From Lytechinus pictus (taxonomy: Eukaryota): a DNA stretch of 64,000 nt. The DNA is taken from contig NC_087246.1 in the NCBI RefSeq assembly GCF_037042905.1, positions 31,248,001-31,312,000 of the forward strand. Reading direction: 5' to 3'. Of this stretch, positions 54,671 to 64,000 are shown piece after piece (the first letter of the stretch is position 1; the number at the start of each line of letters is the position of its first letter). The position numbers and the translations under genes were made by a program. The notes beneath the pieces were generated by a model that worked only from the letters and a program-made list of their open reading frames with translations, did not search any database and was not told the origin of the DNA.

Positions 54671-57047
54671 GTCTGTCGGGAAAAGGGGGGGGGGGGTGCT
54701 CTTAGTTCGTACGTGTGTGGGATGTGCGGTGCGATTATTTTTTTCCTCTCCATTTTCTGTGTCATATTTCTTTACTTCTTTCAGTGAATTGGAAAAATGA
54801 ATTGATCAATAGAATCGATTTATAAATTTATGAAGTGCCTATAGTATAGGCCTATGTTTTATCGATTTGATTTTGTATTAGCCTTATGAAGTATGATGTA
54901 GGCCTATTACTTATGAAGTTATGAAATCTATGCAGTCAGTTTGTTTGTATTGACTTGAAAAAACAATAAAAAATACTTTAAAGAATAAGTGAAATACTGC
55001 CCCTGCATGAAATTTCAGTAAAGCTTCATCTTGTGCCCTCAGTGAACTCATCGATTGAAAAATCTTTGGTCTAATAATCTACTGTATGTGTGGTTTTTTT
55101 TTTACTATACATTTATGATAATATGCACAGGTTCGTTCAATGTTTAAAATGAAGACGTTTTACAGAAGATTATTGGCGATAGGCAGCCAATGTGATAACA
55201 ATGTTTAATGAAATAATATTATAAGGGACAGAACTTGGTTATTTCCCACCCATTTTCCGCATTGATGTATCAAACTAAACCGAACTTCTTTGAAATGTAC
55301 TTTTCTTTTTTAATCTTAAATACTATCCGTCAAGTGATTTTGGTATATTCATTTTTTACTCACCCAAGCATGAATTAGCTAGGTTATTGAACGAGGAGAC
55401 TTGAGCTTTGTCTCCTGCATTTTTCACTGAATTATCAATATATCTCGCTTACATACTTTTTTGCTGCTGTTTTTTGTGGGAAACTTTGTATGACTACACC
55501 TTCACTGGTAATGCTACATATCAACTAGTCCGAAATAGTGATAATTTCCTGTAATATATTCTAACGTCCATTTTGGTCTAATGTCCGAATTTTATCAAAC
55601 ATCAAATTACTCTGTCAATATTTATTTAGTGTCTTAAAATGTAAGTGGGTATCGGGCGTTTTTCAGCCACAATACATTCATGAGTTTGGCTAATGTACAT
55701 GCAATTTTCAGGTATAGGCCTATGCATGGCTCGTAATTATGATAGGCCTTATTTTCCTATATTATGCCAAAGTACAAATTGAATACTTATTTTCTCTGCT
55801 CAAAATTTGTTGCTTTCTTCCGAATTGCTCTAGACAACAGCACTTGTAATAATCATTCTTTCATTATATATCTACTCCAGCCCCACCCCGGGCAAAAATA
55901 AATAAATGAATAAATAAATAAATGAGGAAAAAATGAACCTAAAAACATGCAGAAAACAGACAAACTCGATAGAGCCAAATGTCATCTGTCATTTTTGGCA
56001 ATTTTTTAGTTTTTTTTACAAGTATATATTTCAATATTAAATAAAAACACAAATGTAGCTTGGCAATATCCCCAAAGTTAAAAACGTGACACTTTCTTAA
56101 TTGTGAAATGTGAATGATATCGTACGAAAAAGAGGAAGCTGTTGTTCTCACAAAAAAATCAAACTGGTTCACCATGCATGTAACGGGCAAGTAAGAAACC
56201 GAAATTTAACTTATCCAACGTGTGTAATGAAGCATTTTTTCTCTATTCCTTAAAAAGCTGTGTGCGCTATGAATGCCTAGCTTAGCCGGGTAATGAGCGC
56301 CTTCAGCACCTAACAAGGTGATGATGTGCGCAATATAAATACCATATATTATTATTATTATTCTTCACTTCTTCATGCATGCTTCTATTTATTTCTTTTT
56401 GTTTTCTTCATCTACTAATGTTGTTGTTATTGATATTTTTCCCTCTCTATAATGAACCGAACGATTTTATTGTTTTTACTTTTTTCCCTCCAATTATCTC
56501 TTCTTTTCTGTCTCCTCTTCTCCTTAACTGATTTCTCCATCTTTCTTTCCCTTTTCCCTCTTTTTTATTGCCGCCGCTAATGGGGGGGGGGGGGGGGGGG
56601 GGGGCTATTTTGCCCTTGGACCCGTCTATGATTCCTTTATATAGCTACTTCTTTTTCTTTTCATCGTGAAATTCTTATTCTGCAGTGTGCCCCCTTTCAT
56701 CAGTCCCGTGATCATGTGCCCAAGTGTCTTGTTTTAATTTTAATTTTTTAATTGTTAATTTTAATAATTAATTAATTTTTCAAATAAAAGTTTCTTTTTT
56801 CTAGTTTGTTCTAAGTTTTTTTCCTTTCTAGAGGGGCAGCGGACCGAGGGGAGGGGCAGGAGGAAACATAGGGGAAAATGAAACAAGGACAGGAATCGTT
56901 ATTTATTCACTCCTTCACTCGGATAAATAGCAATGACATTTTCTTTTGATTGTGGTTTTCTCTTTTTTTTTCTATATTTATTATATAGAGTAGACCGCCA
57001 TCTCGCAATGACATTTAGATAGTGGCTAGGCGCTCACGCTTTGCAAC

Positions 57048-58278
57048 ATGGCGTTAGTTTGTTCAAGTAAGCAAGTATTTCATTCAATTATTTCACCGTC
57101 ATCATGCCAATTCCGTAGATTTTTTCGAGGATTCTTTTGGATTGATTTATTAGATTTGTATGATAATAATGATGTTATACGGTTTGCTTTGAATGGGAAA
57201 TTGTAGGGAATGCGATGTTTCGGATTCTTGTGGCGTAGTTTTGATTTCGGTCCCATCAATGCTTTTCAGCGTATGGTCGTGTTGATGTTTAGGCGCCAAT
57301 GCAGTTTCGCACCGGCCGACTTCGTCTTCGAGATAATTTCCCCACCAGTAATTGTTCGAAAATATCATAGCAGCCAGGTCTCTCAATCACATTTCAACTT
57401 CAAGATCAATACATCCAGCGCTTTTCCGGTTGGGCGCTAGTGTAGTTTCGCACCTCCCCATTTAATGGTTTTCAAACATGTACAAAACTACAATCTCACC
57501 CTAAATTATAAATAATTCACAACCTAAAAATTTGCATCTGAGCCTCCAAAGTCCAGTAGAAGTTGAATATTTGCCGTTTTGACACTTTTTTACAAAGTTT
57601 TACACCTATTTCGGAATCACTCGGTCGCTTGATCAAGCTCAGCGCTGCACATAAGCAGTCGGTACGCGTACAGTACGTACCACCTAGTGAAGTGTGTGTG
57701 TGTATTTGAGTTTTGTCAGACGTGTATCAATCAGATATGATTATTTACGTCTGGGACCGACCTTTAACGTCACCATCCGAAAGACGTGACCAGGGCTCGA
57801 ACCTCTGCATCAAATTGTAACTTCCCCGCATAGCTTGGATTACAGGCGCACGCCACAACTTCTTCTTCTTCTTCTTATGTTTGTTTGAGTGGCGATTAGT
57901 CATATTTGACTATTGTCGCCATTGACATTATTAATAAAAAATCTCACTTCTCACATAATAATATTATTACCAATATGATGTATACATATATAAAATATTT
58001 TTTTTGTATCCTTCTGATATGAAAGAGGATAATTATGATATGTACAAAAGTTTGCAGTAACTCTTGTCAAAATGGCATATAAACAAAACTTCACCAAAAA
58101 CAAACCGCTATCTTCAGCTCAGTTCCAACTAGTTGCGCTTGCCCTGCCCTTTCAAAGATGCAATCATACCGGTCAGCACGGTACATTGTGCCGATTTTTC
58201 GGACATAAATGCCTAGGTCACCCATGCATAGACGAGGGGGCGCTAGTGTACCTGTGCTTACAGATGGGTTAAACATTA

Positions 58279-58310
<32 letters not shown>

Positions 58311-61300
58311 CAACACCAACAACAACAAGGCGAAAACACTTGTGGGCTTTGTTAGTTATATGTGCAGAACATATCATTTTGTATATATTATATCATACAT
58401 TATTATGTATATATATATATATATTCTTCTTTTCACATTAGACTTGTACAAGCATATCCATTCATATTTCTTATAGACAATACAATATTAAAATAGTACA
58501 TCACTCCTTACTAAAACGTTTCGTTCTTGAAACGAAACGTAAAAATGCTTTCTGTATCCCTGGGTCATCTTTTTTTAAATACTCCATTATTTGTCCTGGC
58601 TGTGATTCATTCAATTCTACAAGGAGCATTGATCTTTCAATTATATATTTTGGACAATGTAAAAGATAATGTCTGACAGTTTCTAGCTCAGGACATCTAT
58701 CACAAAACCCTGTTGGATGGATCCCTAATCTTAGTAGATCTTGGTTAAGACCAGCGACTCCAAAACGGAGACGATGGAGTACAGTTTCCTGTCTTCCTAG
58801 ATTACATTTATATGTGGATAGCACTGATGGTTGCAATTCTTTCAGTGCTGAGTTAGTTTTATTCCATCTTTCTTGCCAAATTATCTTACAACTTTTTGAA
58901 ATAAGTTGCATAATTTCTGATAATGTTATTTGATTATGAATTTCTATTTTGTTTGATAAAGCTTTTTTTGCGCAGGAGTCTGCTATTTCATTTCCTTTTA
59001 TTCCACAGTGACCAGGGATCCACTCCAGGTATACCTCTATACCTTTATATTTGAGTCTTGTACTAATAGTTAGAATTTCTGTAATGATAGGATCGTCTTT
59101 CCGATTCTGTAAAGATAAAAGTGCACTTAATGAATCACTGAAAATAACAACACCTGTATATATATCTAAATATTCTATCCATTCCAGTGCGAGAACAATC
59201 GCAATTAATTCAGCCCTATAGGAGGACGTGAAATTCGATAGTCTTTTGCCTTGGTAACAGGAAAAATAAGGTACATAAAAAGCAGCTGAGCAACGCCCAG
59301 TTGTGCAAGAAGAGCGAGTTTTTCTATGGTATCTTCAAAAAGATTTTTTCCCCTCTTTCAGCTTGCACCAAGTATTACGGTAGTGGTTGTGCAGAGTGGT
59401 TGATGTTTGTTGTGTGAAGGTATGTGTGTGGGGTGTGCGTGTGTGTGATTTTTTGAATGAAATGTGAAAAATGTGAATACACGTAGATTTAGCGATGAAA
59501 TAAGAAATAATAATGTAGAGCCTTGTTTTGAACTCTAGGTCAGCTCAGAGAACTTTCCTTCAGTTTACACTCTGCACAACCACTACCGTAATACTTGGTG
59601 CAAGCTGAAAGAGGGGGAAAAAATCTTTTTGAAGATACCATAGAAAAACTCGCTTTGGATTGATGGATTACTGTACAAACTCACTCAATGTGGTATAGGA
59701 GGAAATATGTTACATTTTTTAGAAAATTATCTAACAGAACGTACCTTTCAGGTAAGAGTTACAAATACTGAATCCAGAACATTCCAAGTCCATAGCGGAC
59801 TCCCCCAGGGGAGTGTTCTGAGTCCCCTTTTATATAATGTCATGATGAGAGATATTCCAATTGATCCTGAAGTGACAATATCCATATATGCTGATGATTG
59901 TGCAGTATGGTTTTCTGGAAAAAATGTAGAGAATATTAGATTAAGGATACAAACTTATCTAGATGTATTATGTACCTGGCTTAAAGACTAGGGCTTCAAT
60001 TTTTCTATTGAGAAGACTGTTCCGGTATTTTTCACTAAGCTCACAAACGTTACTCCTCCAACAGTCAAGTTTGAAGGGAGTATACTCACTTATAAAAATA
60101 ATCACCGTTTCCTAGGAATGATATTTGATAGTAAATTGTCTTGGCATCCCCATATAGAGAACGTAGTTTCAAGAAGTAAAAGGAAATTAAATATATTGCG
60201 AAGTTTAACAGGAACTAAATGGGGGAGTTCATCTAAGTCCTTACTTATGGTTTACAGGGCAATTATTAGATCAATTTTTGATTATGGTTGTCAAGCTTAT
60301 GATAGTGCTCCAGTATCTACAAAAAAATTGTTAGACTCGGTGCAATATCAAGCACTCAGAATATGTGCTGGTGGGCTGCCATTAACATCGCTAGTTTCAC
60401 TGCAGGTGGAAATGGGAGAACCCCCTTTAGATTTAAGAAGGCAAATGTTATCAAGCAAGTATAGACAAAATATAGAAAGACATAATAATCACCCATTAAT
60501 AACACGTATCAAACCATGCTGGCAGTTCGATTATCTTAAAGGTAAGAATGTTAGTAAACCGTTTGGTTATAGGCTCCAATCCAAGATAGGAAAAGAAATT
60601 AGTATCGAAAATATTATTTCTCCATCCTTTCCCCCTTGGTTATTTTGTCCACCAGTTGTATCTACTGAATTGAGTTCACAAATCAAGAAATCGGATCATC
60701 CAATACAATTACAACAATTGAGTTTGGAATTGATACATACAAAATGGTCACACCAACTCCATATATACACTGATGGATCCAAAGCCCCTGAAAAGGGGAT
60801 TAGCTCAGCTGCTTTTTATGTACCTTATTTTTCCTTCTACCAAGGCAAAAGACTATCGAATTTCACCTCCTCCTATAGGGCGGAATTAATTGCGATTGTT
60901 CTTGCACTGGAATGGATAGAAGATTTAGATATATATACAGGTGTTGTTATTTTCAGTGATTCATTAAGTGCACTTTTATCTTTACAGAATCGGAAAGACG
61001 ATCCTATTATCACAGAAATTCTAACTATTAGTACAAGACTCAAATATAAAGGTATAGAGATATACCTGGAGTGGATCCCTGGTCACTGTGGAATAAAAGG
61101 AAATGAAATAGCAGACTCCTGCGCAAAAAAAGCTTTATCAAATAAAATAGAAATTCATAATCAAATAACATTATCAGAAATTAAGCAACTTATTTCAAAA
61201 AGTTGTAAGATAATTTGGCAAGAAAGATGGAATAAAACTAACTCAGCACTGAAAGAACTGCAACCATCAGTGCTATCCACATATAAATGTAATCTAGGGA

Positions 61301-61782
61301 GACAGGAAACTGTACTCCATCGTCTCCGTTTTGGAGTCGCTGGTCTTAACCAAGATCTACTAATATTAGGGATCCATCCAACAGGGTTTTGTGATAGATG
61401 TCCTGAGGTAGAAACTGTCAGACATTATCTTTTACATTGTCCAAAATATATAATTGAAAGATCAATGCTCCTTGTAGAATTGAATGAATCACAGCCAGGA
61501 CAAATAATGGAGTATTTAAAAAAAGATGACCCAGGGATACAGAAAGCATTTTTACGTTTCGTTTCAAGAACGAAACGTTTTAGTAAGGAGTGATATGTGC
61601 TATTATTATATTGTATTGTTTATAAGAAATATGAAAGGATATGCTTGTACAAGTCTAATGTGAAAAGAATATATATATATATATACATAATAATGTATGA
61701 TATAATATATACAAAATGATATGTTCTGCACATATAACTAACAAAGCCCACAAGTGTTTTCGCCTTGTTGTTGTTGGTGTTG

Positions 61783-61814
<32 letters not shown>

Positions 61815-63963
61815 TAATGTTTAACCCATCTGTAAGCACAGGTACACTAGCGCCCCCTCGTCTATGCATGGGTGACCTAGGCATTTTTATGTCCGAAAAA
61901 TCGGCACAATGTACCGTGCTGACCGGTATGATTGCATCTTAGAAAGGGCAGGGCAAGCGCAACTAGTTGGAACTGGGCTGAAGATAGCGGTTTGTTTTTG
62001 GTGAAGATTTGTTTACATGCCATTTTGACAAGAGTTAAGACAAACTTTTGTAGACCGGTATACTATATTCATCGTTTTTATAATAGAAGGATGCACAAGA
62101 AAAATATTTCATATATGTATACATCATATTGGTAATAATATGAGAAGTGAGATTTTATAGATAAAGTCAATGGCGACAATAGTCAAATATGACTAATTGC
62201 CACTCAAACCAACATAAGAAGAAGAAGAAGCTCTTCTTGCACTTCACTAGGTGGTACGTACTGTACGCGTACCGACTGCTTATGTGCAGCGCTGAGCTTC
62301 AAGCGACCGAGTGATTCCGAAATAGGTGTAAAACTTTGTAAAAAAAAGTGTCAAAACGGCAAATATTCAACTTCTACTGGACTTTGGAGGCTCAGATGCA
62401 AGTATTTTAGGTTGTGAATTATTTAGGGTGAGATTGTACATGTTTGAAAACCATTAAACGGGGAGGTGCGAAACTACACTAGCGCCTCCGGTTGTACTGT
62501 AGAGTAAAGTGCCCAAATATATAAATTTTGATATCTAAGACTAAGACTAAGTAAAGACTAAATCTATAAATGTAATTATTTACTTACCAAACGTAGCCAG
62601 GCGGCTTCTTGAGAGTAAAAATCATTTACTAACGTAGGTTCTCTCAATGAAGCCAGGGAGTCCTTCCTATTCATCTGCGTGTACCGCAAAAAAACCTGAA
62701 AATGACCCCGAGATTTCTACTTTCCTTCTAAAACATCTAGCCATAAATCATGTACATGGGATAAAACTTCATTTCCGACATTTCTACGCTCTCGTTGTTA
62801 TTTTTAAACAAGAATTCATCAAAAAAATGAAAAATATTGTGAAAAGACGGAAGAGACTTGCCCGATGTTTACGCCGCCATCTTGTTTCTTATTGTACTTC
62901 CCCAACGTTACGGACGCGAGCGTCGCGTAACGTTGGGAAAGTATAAAGGATAAAAAAATTCTATGGATTCACATAGCCTTTGACATGACAGGACTGCTGA
63001 TATTTCACAACCACACACAGAAACTTCAACTATTCAAGTTTCAACAATAAAAAATCTGACATTTATCAAAAAGCAAACCCTGAAATGATCTGAGAATGTG
63101 GCCAAACATGGAAAGAGCTTTCAAAATTTTCAAATTATCAACAGATCTGAGCTCATTTTGAGCGGATTTTGTTGCATTTCGGAGATAAAGGTTGAAATTG
63201 AGTCGGATTTGAGCTAAGTTTACAATGTTGATTTTTCTGTACAAAACTAGTAACCTAAGTTATTGTATATTTTGACGATGCTACAATTCGTTAAGTGAAA
63301 GTAAGGCATTGCTTGGACTGATAAATCTGTTTCGGAGGAGGTTTTTCAACATTTTTTTTTTTTTTTTTGCCCTCGTACACGGAGGATGACGGCCATTGGG
63401 CTCGTAGGGGTGGAGCTCCACCGACGTCTTAACTACAGCGTCTATGGAGAAAAGGGTGCAATTTTGCACCCTCCTCGATTACTCCTAAATTTTGCTTTTT
63501 GACGGGGGAGGGGGAAGAAAGAAATGATGAAGATAAATTTATATTAAATAAAATCAGCTTACCAAGGTGGTAAGCAGAGCATATCCCTGACAGAAATAGA
63601 CTAGATTTATCGGTCTAGGCATTGCCTTGCAATTATATCCTACAGAAAGCCTTTCTGAAGTCTTCGCTTCACCTTCGTTCCAAGCAAACATCCTTCTACA
63701 TTTTAATAGAATTTTCTTTTTCTTTTTTAGAGTGTATCCTAATTTCCTAAAAATGCCCCATTAATTTCACACTGTATCCAAATTTCCTTCTTTTTTTGTT
63801 TGATCTCTTTAAGTCTCTAATGAGGTACCTGAGGTTCCTGTCGTATCACCAGCATCAGGTCGAGTCTTTGAGAAGAGACTAATTGAGAAGTTCATCTCTG
63901 AGAATGGCACTGATCCTGTCAATGGAGAACCTCTTTCTGAAGATCAGCTGATTGAGGTCAAAG
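57048..63963 (+). CDS. PRPF19: Pre-mRNA-processing factor 19, U-box exons; gene continues beyond window
   Basis: Exon 57048-57066 plus exon 63814-63963: [56 protein letters not shown], matching human MSLICSISNEVPEHPCVSP... Confidence 0.95.
57695..59302 (-). mobile_element. SINE with 7SL(Alu-domain)-like head, split into 59302-59291 and 57859-57695 by a LINE
   Basis: Rejoined across a CAAC duplication: AACTGGGCGTTGTGGCGTGCGCCTGTAATCCAAGCTATGCGGGGA...GGTTCGAGCCC...TCTTTCGGATGGTGACGTTAAA...ACTCAAATA(CA)n; GTG duplicated at its own insertion site. Confidence 0.8.
57860..59290 (-). mobile_element. 5'-truncated I-group (Nimb/Ingi-like) LINE copy: RNase H part, CCHC finger, 3' UTR, (AAG)n tail
   Basis: Reverse complement of 60804-62230 with scattered substitutions; ORF 58501-58911. 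Confidence 0.9.
59655..62230 (+). mobile_element. 5'-truncated I-group (Nimb/Ingi-like) LINE with RT, RNase H and CCHC zinc knuckle
   Basis: Frame 59656-61593 with one nonsense codon (TAG 59989-59991): [57 protein letters not shown]; 3' stem-loop and (AAG)5 tail. Confidence 0.92.
62593..62900 (+). repeat. Uninterrupted copy of repeat X in PRPF19 intron 1
   Basis: Colinear with the fragmented copy at 27677-33040; contains CGCCGCCATCTTG. Confidence 0.7.
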
Positions 63964-64000
63964 GTTAGTTAATCTTTGAGATTTCTCAAGAGGGTTCTTA

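Follow-up and report, generated by a model that had tools for sequence, protein, structure and literature searches.

Why should three retroelements lie nested in the two arms of one DNA transposon, all of them in the same orientation and all close to one position of its inverted repeat? We addressed this question for a stretch of 64,000 nucleotides of the Lytechinus pictus genome (NCBI RefSeq assembly GCF_037042905.1, contig NC_087246.1, positions 31,248,001 to 31,312,000 of the forward strand; GC ~35%), here called the window, in which a foldback DNA element with long terminal inverted repeats (TIRs) contains two long interspersed nuclear elements (LINEs) and one short interspersed nuclear element (SINE). 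An earlier note, made from the sequence alone, had read the three insertions as a targeted LINE/SINE system that selects a position rather than a sequence, and every feature that it described for them is present. By reading 90 loci of the host assembly (812 Mb searched), and by counting specified patterns for the remaining genome-wide figures, we observe that insertion at this arm is strongly non-random, orientation-exclusive and recurrent, and that the three nested insertions represent targeted integration, not chance. We consider it probable that the arms of this non-autonomous element carry a composite LINE site, made up of the motif GAYACC and a nick context, in addition to a separate SINE hot spot.

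A foldback DNA element with three independent insertions

The foldback element occupies positions 57433-62486 of the window and is bounded on both sides by the 8-bp target-site duplication TCCGGTTG (57425-57432 and 62487-62494), as demonstrated by direct reading of 56500-64000 and an inverted-repeat scan. Each arm is ~350 bp long and is broken by retroelement insertions. On the left, an outer part (57433-57694, forward strand, last letters CCTAGTGAAGTG, inverted-repeat pairs I6, I7, I9 and I10) is separated from an inner part (59303-59398, forward strand, pairs I8 and I12) that runs on into the outer arm in empty copies; beyond the central loop defined by the scan (59399-59567), the inner right arm (59568-59654, forward strand, last letters GAAAAACTCGCT, pair I12) is likewise separated from the outer right arm (62231-62486, reverse strand), which was delimited by the scan and by near-identical arms elsewhere. 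More than 100 such near-identical arms are spread over many contigs, and terminal inverted repeats, a target-site duplication and dispersed copies together identify a non-autonomous foldback, or long-TIR, DNA transposon. The uninterrupted arm reconstructed in the earlier note has no counterpart in the window (0 occurrences of the 31-mer across the empty site), yet it is genuine sequence, found in ~38 other fetched arms, and a 50-mer across the site with at most 2 mismatches identifies 102 empty arms genome-wide.

The right arm contains a LINE on the forward strand (59655-62230) that is 5'-truncated within its reverse transcriptase (RT) and ends in a (GAA)n tail. Its open reading frames encode, in the same frame and with one in-frame stop (59989-59991), the C-terminal part of the RT (Pfam RVT_1, E 4e-13) and an RNase H (RNase_H, E 5.8e-15), and they are followed by a long 3' untranslated region (UTR) with an internal A-run, similar to that of 29 other copies. 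The 2-3-bp overlap seen earlier at this insertion proved to be a target duplication, CT or GCT. The left arm contains a SINE on the reverse strand, of which the 3' 165 nt (57695-57859, with a (CA)n tail toward the outer arm) match more than 40 scored copies at 99-100% identity, and of which the 5' 12 nt (AACTGGGCGTTG, 59291-59302) agree with the 5' end of 29 other SINE copies. These two parts are severed by the left LINE (57860-59290, reverse strand), which is 5'-truncated at ~1.43 kb, has its (GAA)n tail outward and, against the 5' consensus of the 29 SINE copies, lies 10-12 nt in from the SINE 5' end, a refinement of the 8-12 nt given before. Since the left LINE is bracketed by SINE sequence with a GTTG duplication (57856-57859 and 59291-59294), the order of events in the left arm was the SINE, then the LINE into the SINE 5' end. 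Over 1442 bp the two LINEs share 95.4% identity, their truncation points differ, and the left LINE has its own duplication in the SINE; the three insertions are therefore independent, and gene conversion, which the earlier note had allowed as a source of the second LINE, is rejected together with an inverted duplication of one arm.

We also considered the A-run (61780-61808) as a poly(A) tail, with either a separate element or a 3' transduction in the 421 bp behind it. Both readings were rejected, since almost all of the 29 other LINE copies contain the A-run and the next 421 bp as an inner part of their 3' UTR; the genuine tail is (GAA)n, with ~5 units. A 13-mer in the same UTR, GGGCGCTAGTGTA (58238-58252 and 61842-61856), equals the terminus of the foldback element, either by chance or as a captured transposon end.

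The LINE family is small, with 106 exact 3' ends and 231 first-look candidates genome-wide, and its protein relatives are echinoid (57% in Strongylocentrotus, also Lytechinus). One relative, P0037, which is 56-62% identical to the LINE, combines an N-terminal endonuclease of the apurinic/apyrimidinic endonuclease (APE) type (Exo_endo_phos) with RVT_1; in the two window copies the truncation lies within or after the RT. RNase H downstream of the RT is the architecture of I-group LINEs (PMC4640811), and the window LINE has this order of domains, RT then RNase H in ORF2. Our census of the family is partial and comprises the 29 other copies read, with no full-length LINE among them. Approximately 10 LINE 3' ends, among them three pairs with a spacing of 1440 bp, are clustered on one strand at C17:17.1-18.5 Mb, probably through tandem or segmental duplication, and the cluster inflates the copy counts.

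LINE insertions recur at identical nucleotides

Four of the 106 exact LINE 3' ends abut one and the same nucleotide of the arm. The LINEs at this nucleotide are 2576 bp long here and 1117 bp long in L040, where the junction deviates by the loss of 1 nt, and the LINE at C5:45594314 is at most a few hundred bp long, as judged from coordinates, because a SINE junction in the opposite arm is only 705 bp off. The LINE in L038 shows 99% identity and extends at its 5' end beyond the locus read. As lengths and truncations differ at a shared nucleotide, at least three independent events have taken place there. A fifth LINE tail, at C13:8447309, is 16 nt from the arm anchor, versus 22 nt in the others. 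Orientation relative to this TIR family is equally constrained: genome-wide pattern counts identified no LINE or SINE tail of opposite orientation within 60 nt of the inner arm.

The same behaviour is seen in a second long-TIR element family, T3, which is ~840 bp long, has 455 motif-bearing sites genome-wide and often occurs as inverted pairs; for example, the T3 element at L036:701-1980 contains GAAGACACC in each arm, pointing outward. Three LINE copies of differing lengths share an identical junction in T3, and the empty sister arm in L036 demonstrates a blunt insertion at TCG^CATCG. The word CGAGTGATT is common to T3 and the arm family of the window, a likeness which suggests that the two may be related transposon families. 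Reuse extends to the junction of the left LINE in the SINE 5' end (GTTG|TGGCG, the bar marking the junction), which recurs in L049 with a LINE copy of a 91% subfamily that has a different truncation and is independent. The LINE pairs L051/L060 and L043/L053 each share a target as well, of which L043/L053 may be a local duplication (98.8% identical flanks, same contig).

Independent insertions of a LINE at one nucleotide and in one orientation of a multicopy target, which we find both in the arm and in T3, are a mark of target-specific LINEs of the APE type. The proposal that position and not sequence is selected is not supported by this result, in that independent events reuse the identical nucleotide in both families, often at TCG^C. 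Recurrent targets nevertheless account for the minority of LINE copies: ~9-10 of the 29 sampled, with 4-5 of the 106 3' ends in the arm and 3 in T3.

Could a single ancestral insertion have been copied, by composite transposition, segmental duplication or gene conversion from arm to arm, with no targeting involved? One 3' junction type is present in 13 of 17 SINE-filled arms and one junction in 3 of 4 LINE-filled arms, some of the filled arms may be amplified composites, and the pair L043/L053 has the appearance of local copying. However, the 5' truncation varies among the LINEs that share the site, the two window LINEs are at different sites and only 95.4% identical, the flanks outside the arms differ, and the SINE junctions (described below) are of at least five types, including a 5'-truncated SINE and two types in the arms of one element. 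We regard this explanation as very improbable, and as a full account of the data it is refuted by the differing truncation points.

A motif upstream of the LINE insertion sites

Our analysis of the LINE copies with a 5' junction inside the fetched locus showed that 13 of 20 contain GAYACC, mostly as AAGAYACCAT, 11-37 nt upstream of that junction. With targets collapsed to 16 distinct ones, and with all 6-mers with one degenerate position scanned de novo, GAYACC was the top word of this unbiased scan, present in 10 of the 16 targets, where the maximum over 300 shuffles was 6. The word is absent from the LINE downstream flanks (0/16), and upstream of non-arm SINE copies, which serve as a genomic control, it was found in 0 of 27, the two arm-resident copies being the only ones with the motif. 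In the window, GATACC is located in the right arm (59634-59639, forward strand) 15 nt upstream of the 5' junction of the right LINE, and in the left arm (59328-59333, reverse strand) at 25 nt from the 5' junction of the SINE and 37 nt from that of the left LINE. The cut itself often falls at TCG^C, as in ACTCG^CT in the arm, ATCG^CATCG in T3, ATCG^CTA in L056 and GTCG^ACG in L050, and the target duplications range from 0 to 4 bp.

Two further ideas about these sites were tried and rejected. Not every motif-bearing target is a long-TIR element, since some are without inverted repeats. Microhomology of the LINE tail with the primer strand fits L046 only; at the arm, that strand is same-sense, not complementary.

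The earlier note had suggested that something bound to the inner TIR, such as an inward-facing promoter, anchors the insertions. The motif at 11-37 nt upstream in 10 of 16 targets is in keeping with an anchor there, but we found no promoter and no gene of RNA polymerase III (Pol III): ARAGORN identified no transfer RNA (tRNA) gene within the window, and no Rfam family reaches its gathering score in the foldback element. A match of the empty element to MIR2646 (82 bits, with a gathering score of 245) is below threshold and was dismissed as merely a hairpin.

A separate SINE hot spot in the same arm

The SINE is a young element in many copies (902 exact 3' ends genome-wide); it begins with (AA)CTGGGCGTTGTGGCG and terminates in (CA)n. 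Its head aligns with the Alu domain of 7SL RNA, with a complete copy (L062:1494-1700) scoring 31.7 bits (E 3.8e-5) against the Rfam family Metazoa_SRP, under the gathering score of 70. SINEs with a 7SL head have been reported as confined to euarchontoglires (PMC4494074).

Arms filled by this SINE number 17 with exact flanks, in addition to L017 and both arms of L021, versus 102 empty arms, an occupancy of ~15%; overall, at least 19 of ~126 arms are occupied. These arms contain at least five distinct junction types, which we read as at least five independent events: GCAC|AACTGGGC in this window; GCACTT|CTGGGC with a CACTT duplication in L021 and L068; CACTTCACTA|ACTGGGC in L002 and the other arm of L021, an element with different types in its two arms; a complex junction with a hairpin extension in L012; and a 5'-truncated SINE in L017. 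The complex junction of L012 and L074 (C16:2119198) consists of a triplicated CTTCTTGCAC and the extension GCCACAA, which pairs as a hairpin with the SINE 5' end and recurs in L062; the extended junction resembles the outcome of template switching at the 5' end. Within the arm, the nicks used by the SINE fall after ...AGTG, which is able to pair with the (CA)n tail. Across the genome, the sole consensus of the SINE 3' flanks is CA|C[GT], and a search for an extended nick consensus returned nothing further.

A second SINE hot spot is located in an unrelated dispersed repeat, at ...ACCATACCGGCC^TGCAAAAG (L066, L082 and L089, near position 1500), where 11 sites are filled and 178 empty and where four junction types occur within ~5 nt. 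No inverted repeat is present within 3 kb of it.

This second hot spot bears on the idea that DNA structure attracts the insertions, with inverted arms extruding hairpins or cruciforms, or stalling replication, and so exposing a nick or a single-stranded patch. The arm under study, T3, and probably T5 and L056, are within inverted-repeat elements, and the SINE has no strong local consensus, both of which suit such a mechanism. Yet the hot spot in the arm is ~90 bp away from the loop, in a perfectly paired stem, the second SINE hot spot and the LINE targets L034, L050 and L052 are without such a structure at the site, and short, regular duplications with a fixed orientation are suited rather to integration driven by an endonuclease. 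We therefore think it improbable that structure directs these insertions. The SINE hot spot in the arm is real, but neither the motif, nor a local consensus, nor the LINE explains the preference.

No support for a mobilizing LINE/SINE pair

Our results do not support a relationship in which the LINE mobilizes the SINE. Their tails differ, (GAA)n in the LINE versus (CA)n in the SINE; the similarity of their 3' 75 nt is no better than that of shuffles (score 25 versus 20.7 +/- 3.7), and their 3' ends have in common a two-tier stem-loop layout only. We found 0 SINE insertions in T3 and 0 LINE insertions in the second SINE hot spot. Mobilization of the SINE by this LINE was thus rejected as tested, by tails, 3' ends, T3, the second hot spot and the motif, and with no shared 3' end or tail and no shared genome-wide target preference we do not regard the two as a mobilizing pair. 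Of the targeted LINE/SINE system that had been proposed, the targeting stands and the single system is not supported.

An alternative that would bring two unlike elements together is tethering, along the lines of the earlier note, in which a protein of the host or of the transposon, or else a transcription complex, sits on the inner arm and draws retroelement particles to it, so that position sets integration, in the manner of TRE5-A. That LINE and SINE, which are unlike in tails, nick contexts and other targets, converge on a ~30 bp stretch in one orientation speaks for it, and it would also accommodate the variable spacing between LINE and motif and the choice by the left LINE of a site 37 nt out despite an intact canonical site. 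On the other hand, the element is without a detected tRNA gene, other Pol III gene or Rfam family, the motif also lies ahead of LINE insertions in unrelated sequences that are not foldback elements, independent events reuse the exact nucleotide, and T3, despite its motif, is not hit by the SINE. We judge tethering unlikely, and we give an equally low probability to its more specific form, in which the GAA-tailed LINE and the mobilizer of the SINE are both recruited by a factor at the inner-arm motif, for example the transposon's own transposase or a host protein, so that retroelements would be tethered to the ends of a DNA transposon as they integrate.

A proposed composite LINE site in the transposon arm

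The reading that we favour is that the LINE preference is bipartite and guided by sequence, with a distal motif and a local nick context, so that no promoter or tRNA gene is needed as an explanation. Each arm would contain one outward-pointing composite site preferred by a young LINE family with RT and RNase H whose relatives have an APE endonuclease. Such a site would consist of (AA)GAYACC(AT) and, 10-35 nt further on, a nick context that is often A-rich and then TCG^C; the LINE would integrate there by target-primed reverse transcription with a duplication of 0-4 bp, its 5' end toward the motif and its (GAA)n tail away from it. Since one arm mirrors the other, insertions into both of them mirror each other as well, and the result is the 5-kb palindrome. 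The SINE has an orientation-exclusive hot spot of its own in this arm, at ...AGTG^ sites that lie 22-29 nt from the motif and can pair with the (CA)n tail. Recurrence at the same site, by independent events, in a fixed orientation and with enrichment of the motif, is observed directly; that the LINE machinery reads the GAYACC motif is something that we infer, as we do which protein reads it and the reason for the SINE's preference for the arm.

Several observations weigh against this reading. Exact GAYACC is absent from 6 of the 16 targets, of which several have near-variants (GCCACC, AAGTACC, TCCACC) and others have doubtful, possibly rearranged junctions, and 5' junctions were resolved for ~18 of the 29 other LINE copies read. 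The arm under study, T3, T5, L046 and L049 may be distant relatives, in which case GAYACC would be a conserved feature of transposons and not a recognized element. A spacing that varies from 11 to 37 nt is unusual for an APE endonuclease, and in published APE-type cases recognition covers ~10 bp around the cut (PMC1919474). None of the LINE copies recovered is full-length, and hence no DNA-binding module was identified in the LINE. The unexplained preference of the SINE counts on the same side.

Surroundings of the element

Downstream of the foldback element, a coding exon at 63820-63965 resembles the N-terminal U-box region of PRP19/PRPF19, which places the palindrome within or adjoining that gene. 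Upstream of the element there is a G-run of ~24 nt (56585-56608).

Significance and comparison with known systems

Site-directed DNA integration has natural models in target-specific LINEs. If the bipartite reading is true, guidance by a short word 10-35 bp off, apart from the nick context, would suggest a second module for reading DNA, one that could be separated from the endonuclease. The case also illustrates that DNA-transposon arms can serve retroelements as safe harbours, as with Tx1L, and that mirror-image hits in two arms generate large palindromes inside a gene intron. The SINE hot spots, with an occupancy of 15% in one arm family and 6% in another repeat family, are a concrete and testable puzzle. 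Our literature search for an echinoderm LINE that targets transposon arms found no report.

In Dictyostelium, TRE5-A shows position-specific integration upstream of tRNA genes, and the present LINE resembles it in integrating at a distance from an anchor and in a fixed orientation to it, without a strict cleavage sequence. Unlike TRE5-A, no Pol III gene was found here, the candidate anchor is a 6-8-nt word in many unrelated targets, and the same nucleotide is hit in each context; with no Pol III gene present, the analogy drawn in the earlier note comes down to a functional resemblance. The R2 element has a restriction-like endonuclease with N-terminal zinc-finger and Myb domains, and its protein makes contacts remote from the cleavage site that contribute to fixing where integration occurs. 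A distal contact as a guide would be common to R2 and the window LINE, unlike the domain order, in that relatives of the window LINE begin with an APE domain.

Also close are the R1-clade LINEs (R1Bm, TRAS1 and SART1), a group with APE, RT and RNase H and with many target-specific members, which share with the window LINE the fixed orientation and the nucleotide-precise reuse of sites. The TRAS1 endonuclease is the only credible sequence match in the PDB to the endonuclease region of P0037, a weak one (E 0.008). The targets of R1-clade LINEs are ribosomal DNA, telomeric repeats and microsatellites, read around the cut (PMC1919474), whereas here they are transposon arms with a distal motif.

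The closest precedent is Tx1L of Xenopus laevis, an APE-type LINE with a defined site in the DNA transposon Tx1D (PMC1950540, PMC1919474); in both cases, a LINE, here one putatively of the APE type, uses one defined site in a DNA-transposon family, a "safe" multicopy target. Tx1L is described as near-exclusive to its site and as reading ~10 bp at the cut, whereas ~1/3 of the LINE copies sampled here are in recurrent sites, which belong to several target families and have a common word 11-37 nt away. In addition, and unlike Tx1L, the window LINE has RNase H after the RT, the I-group architecture (PMC4640811).

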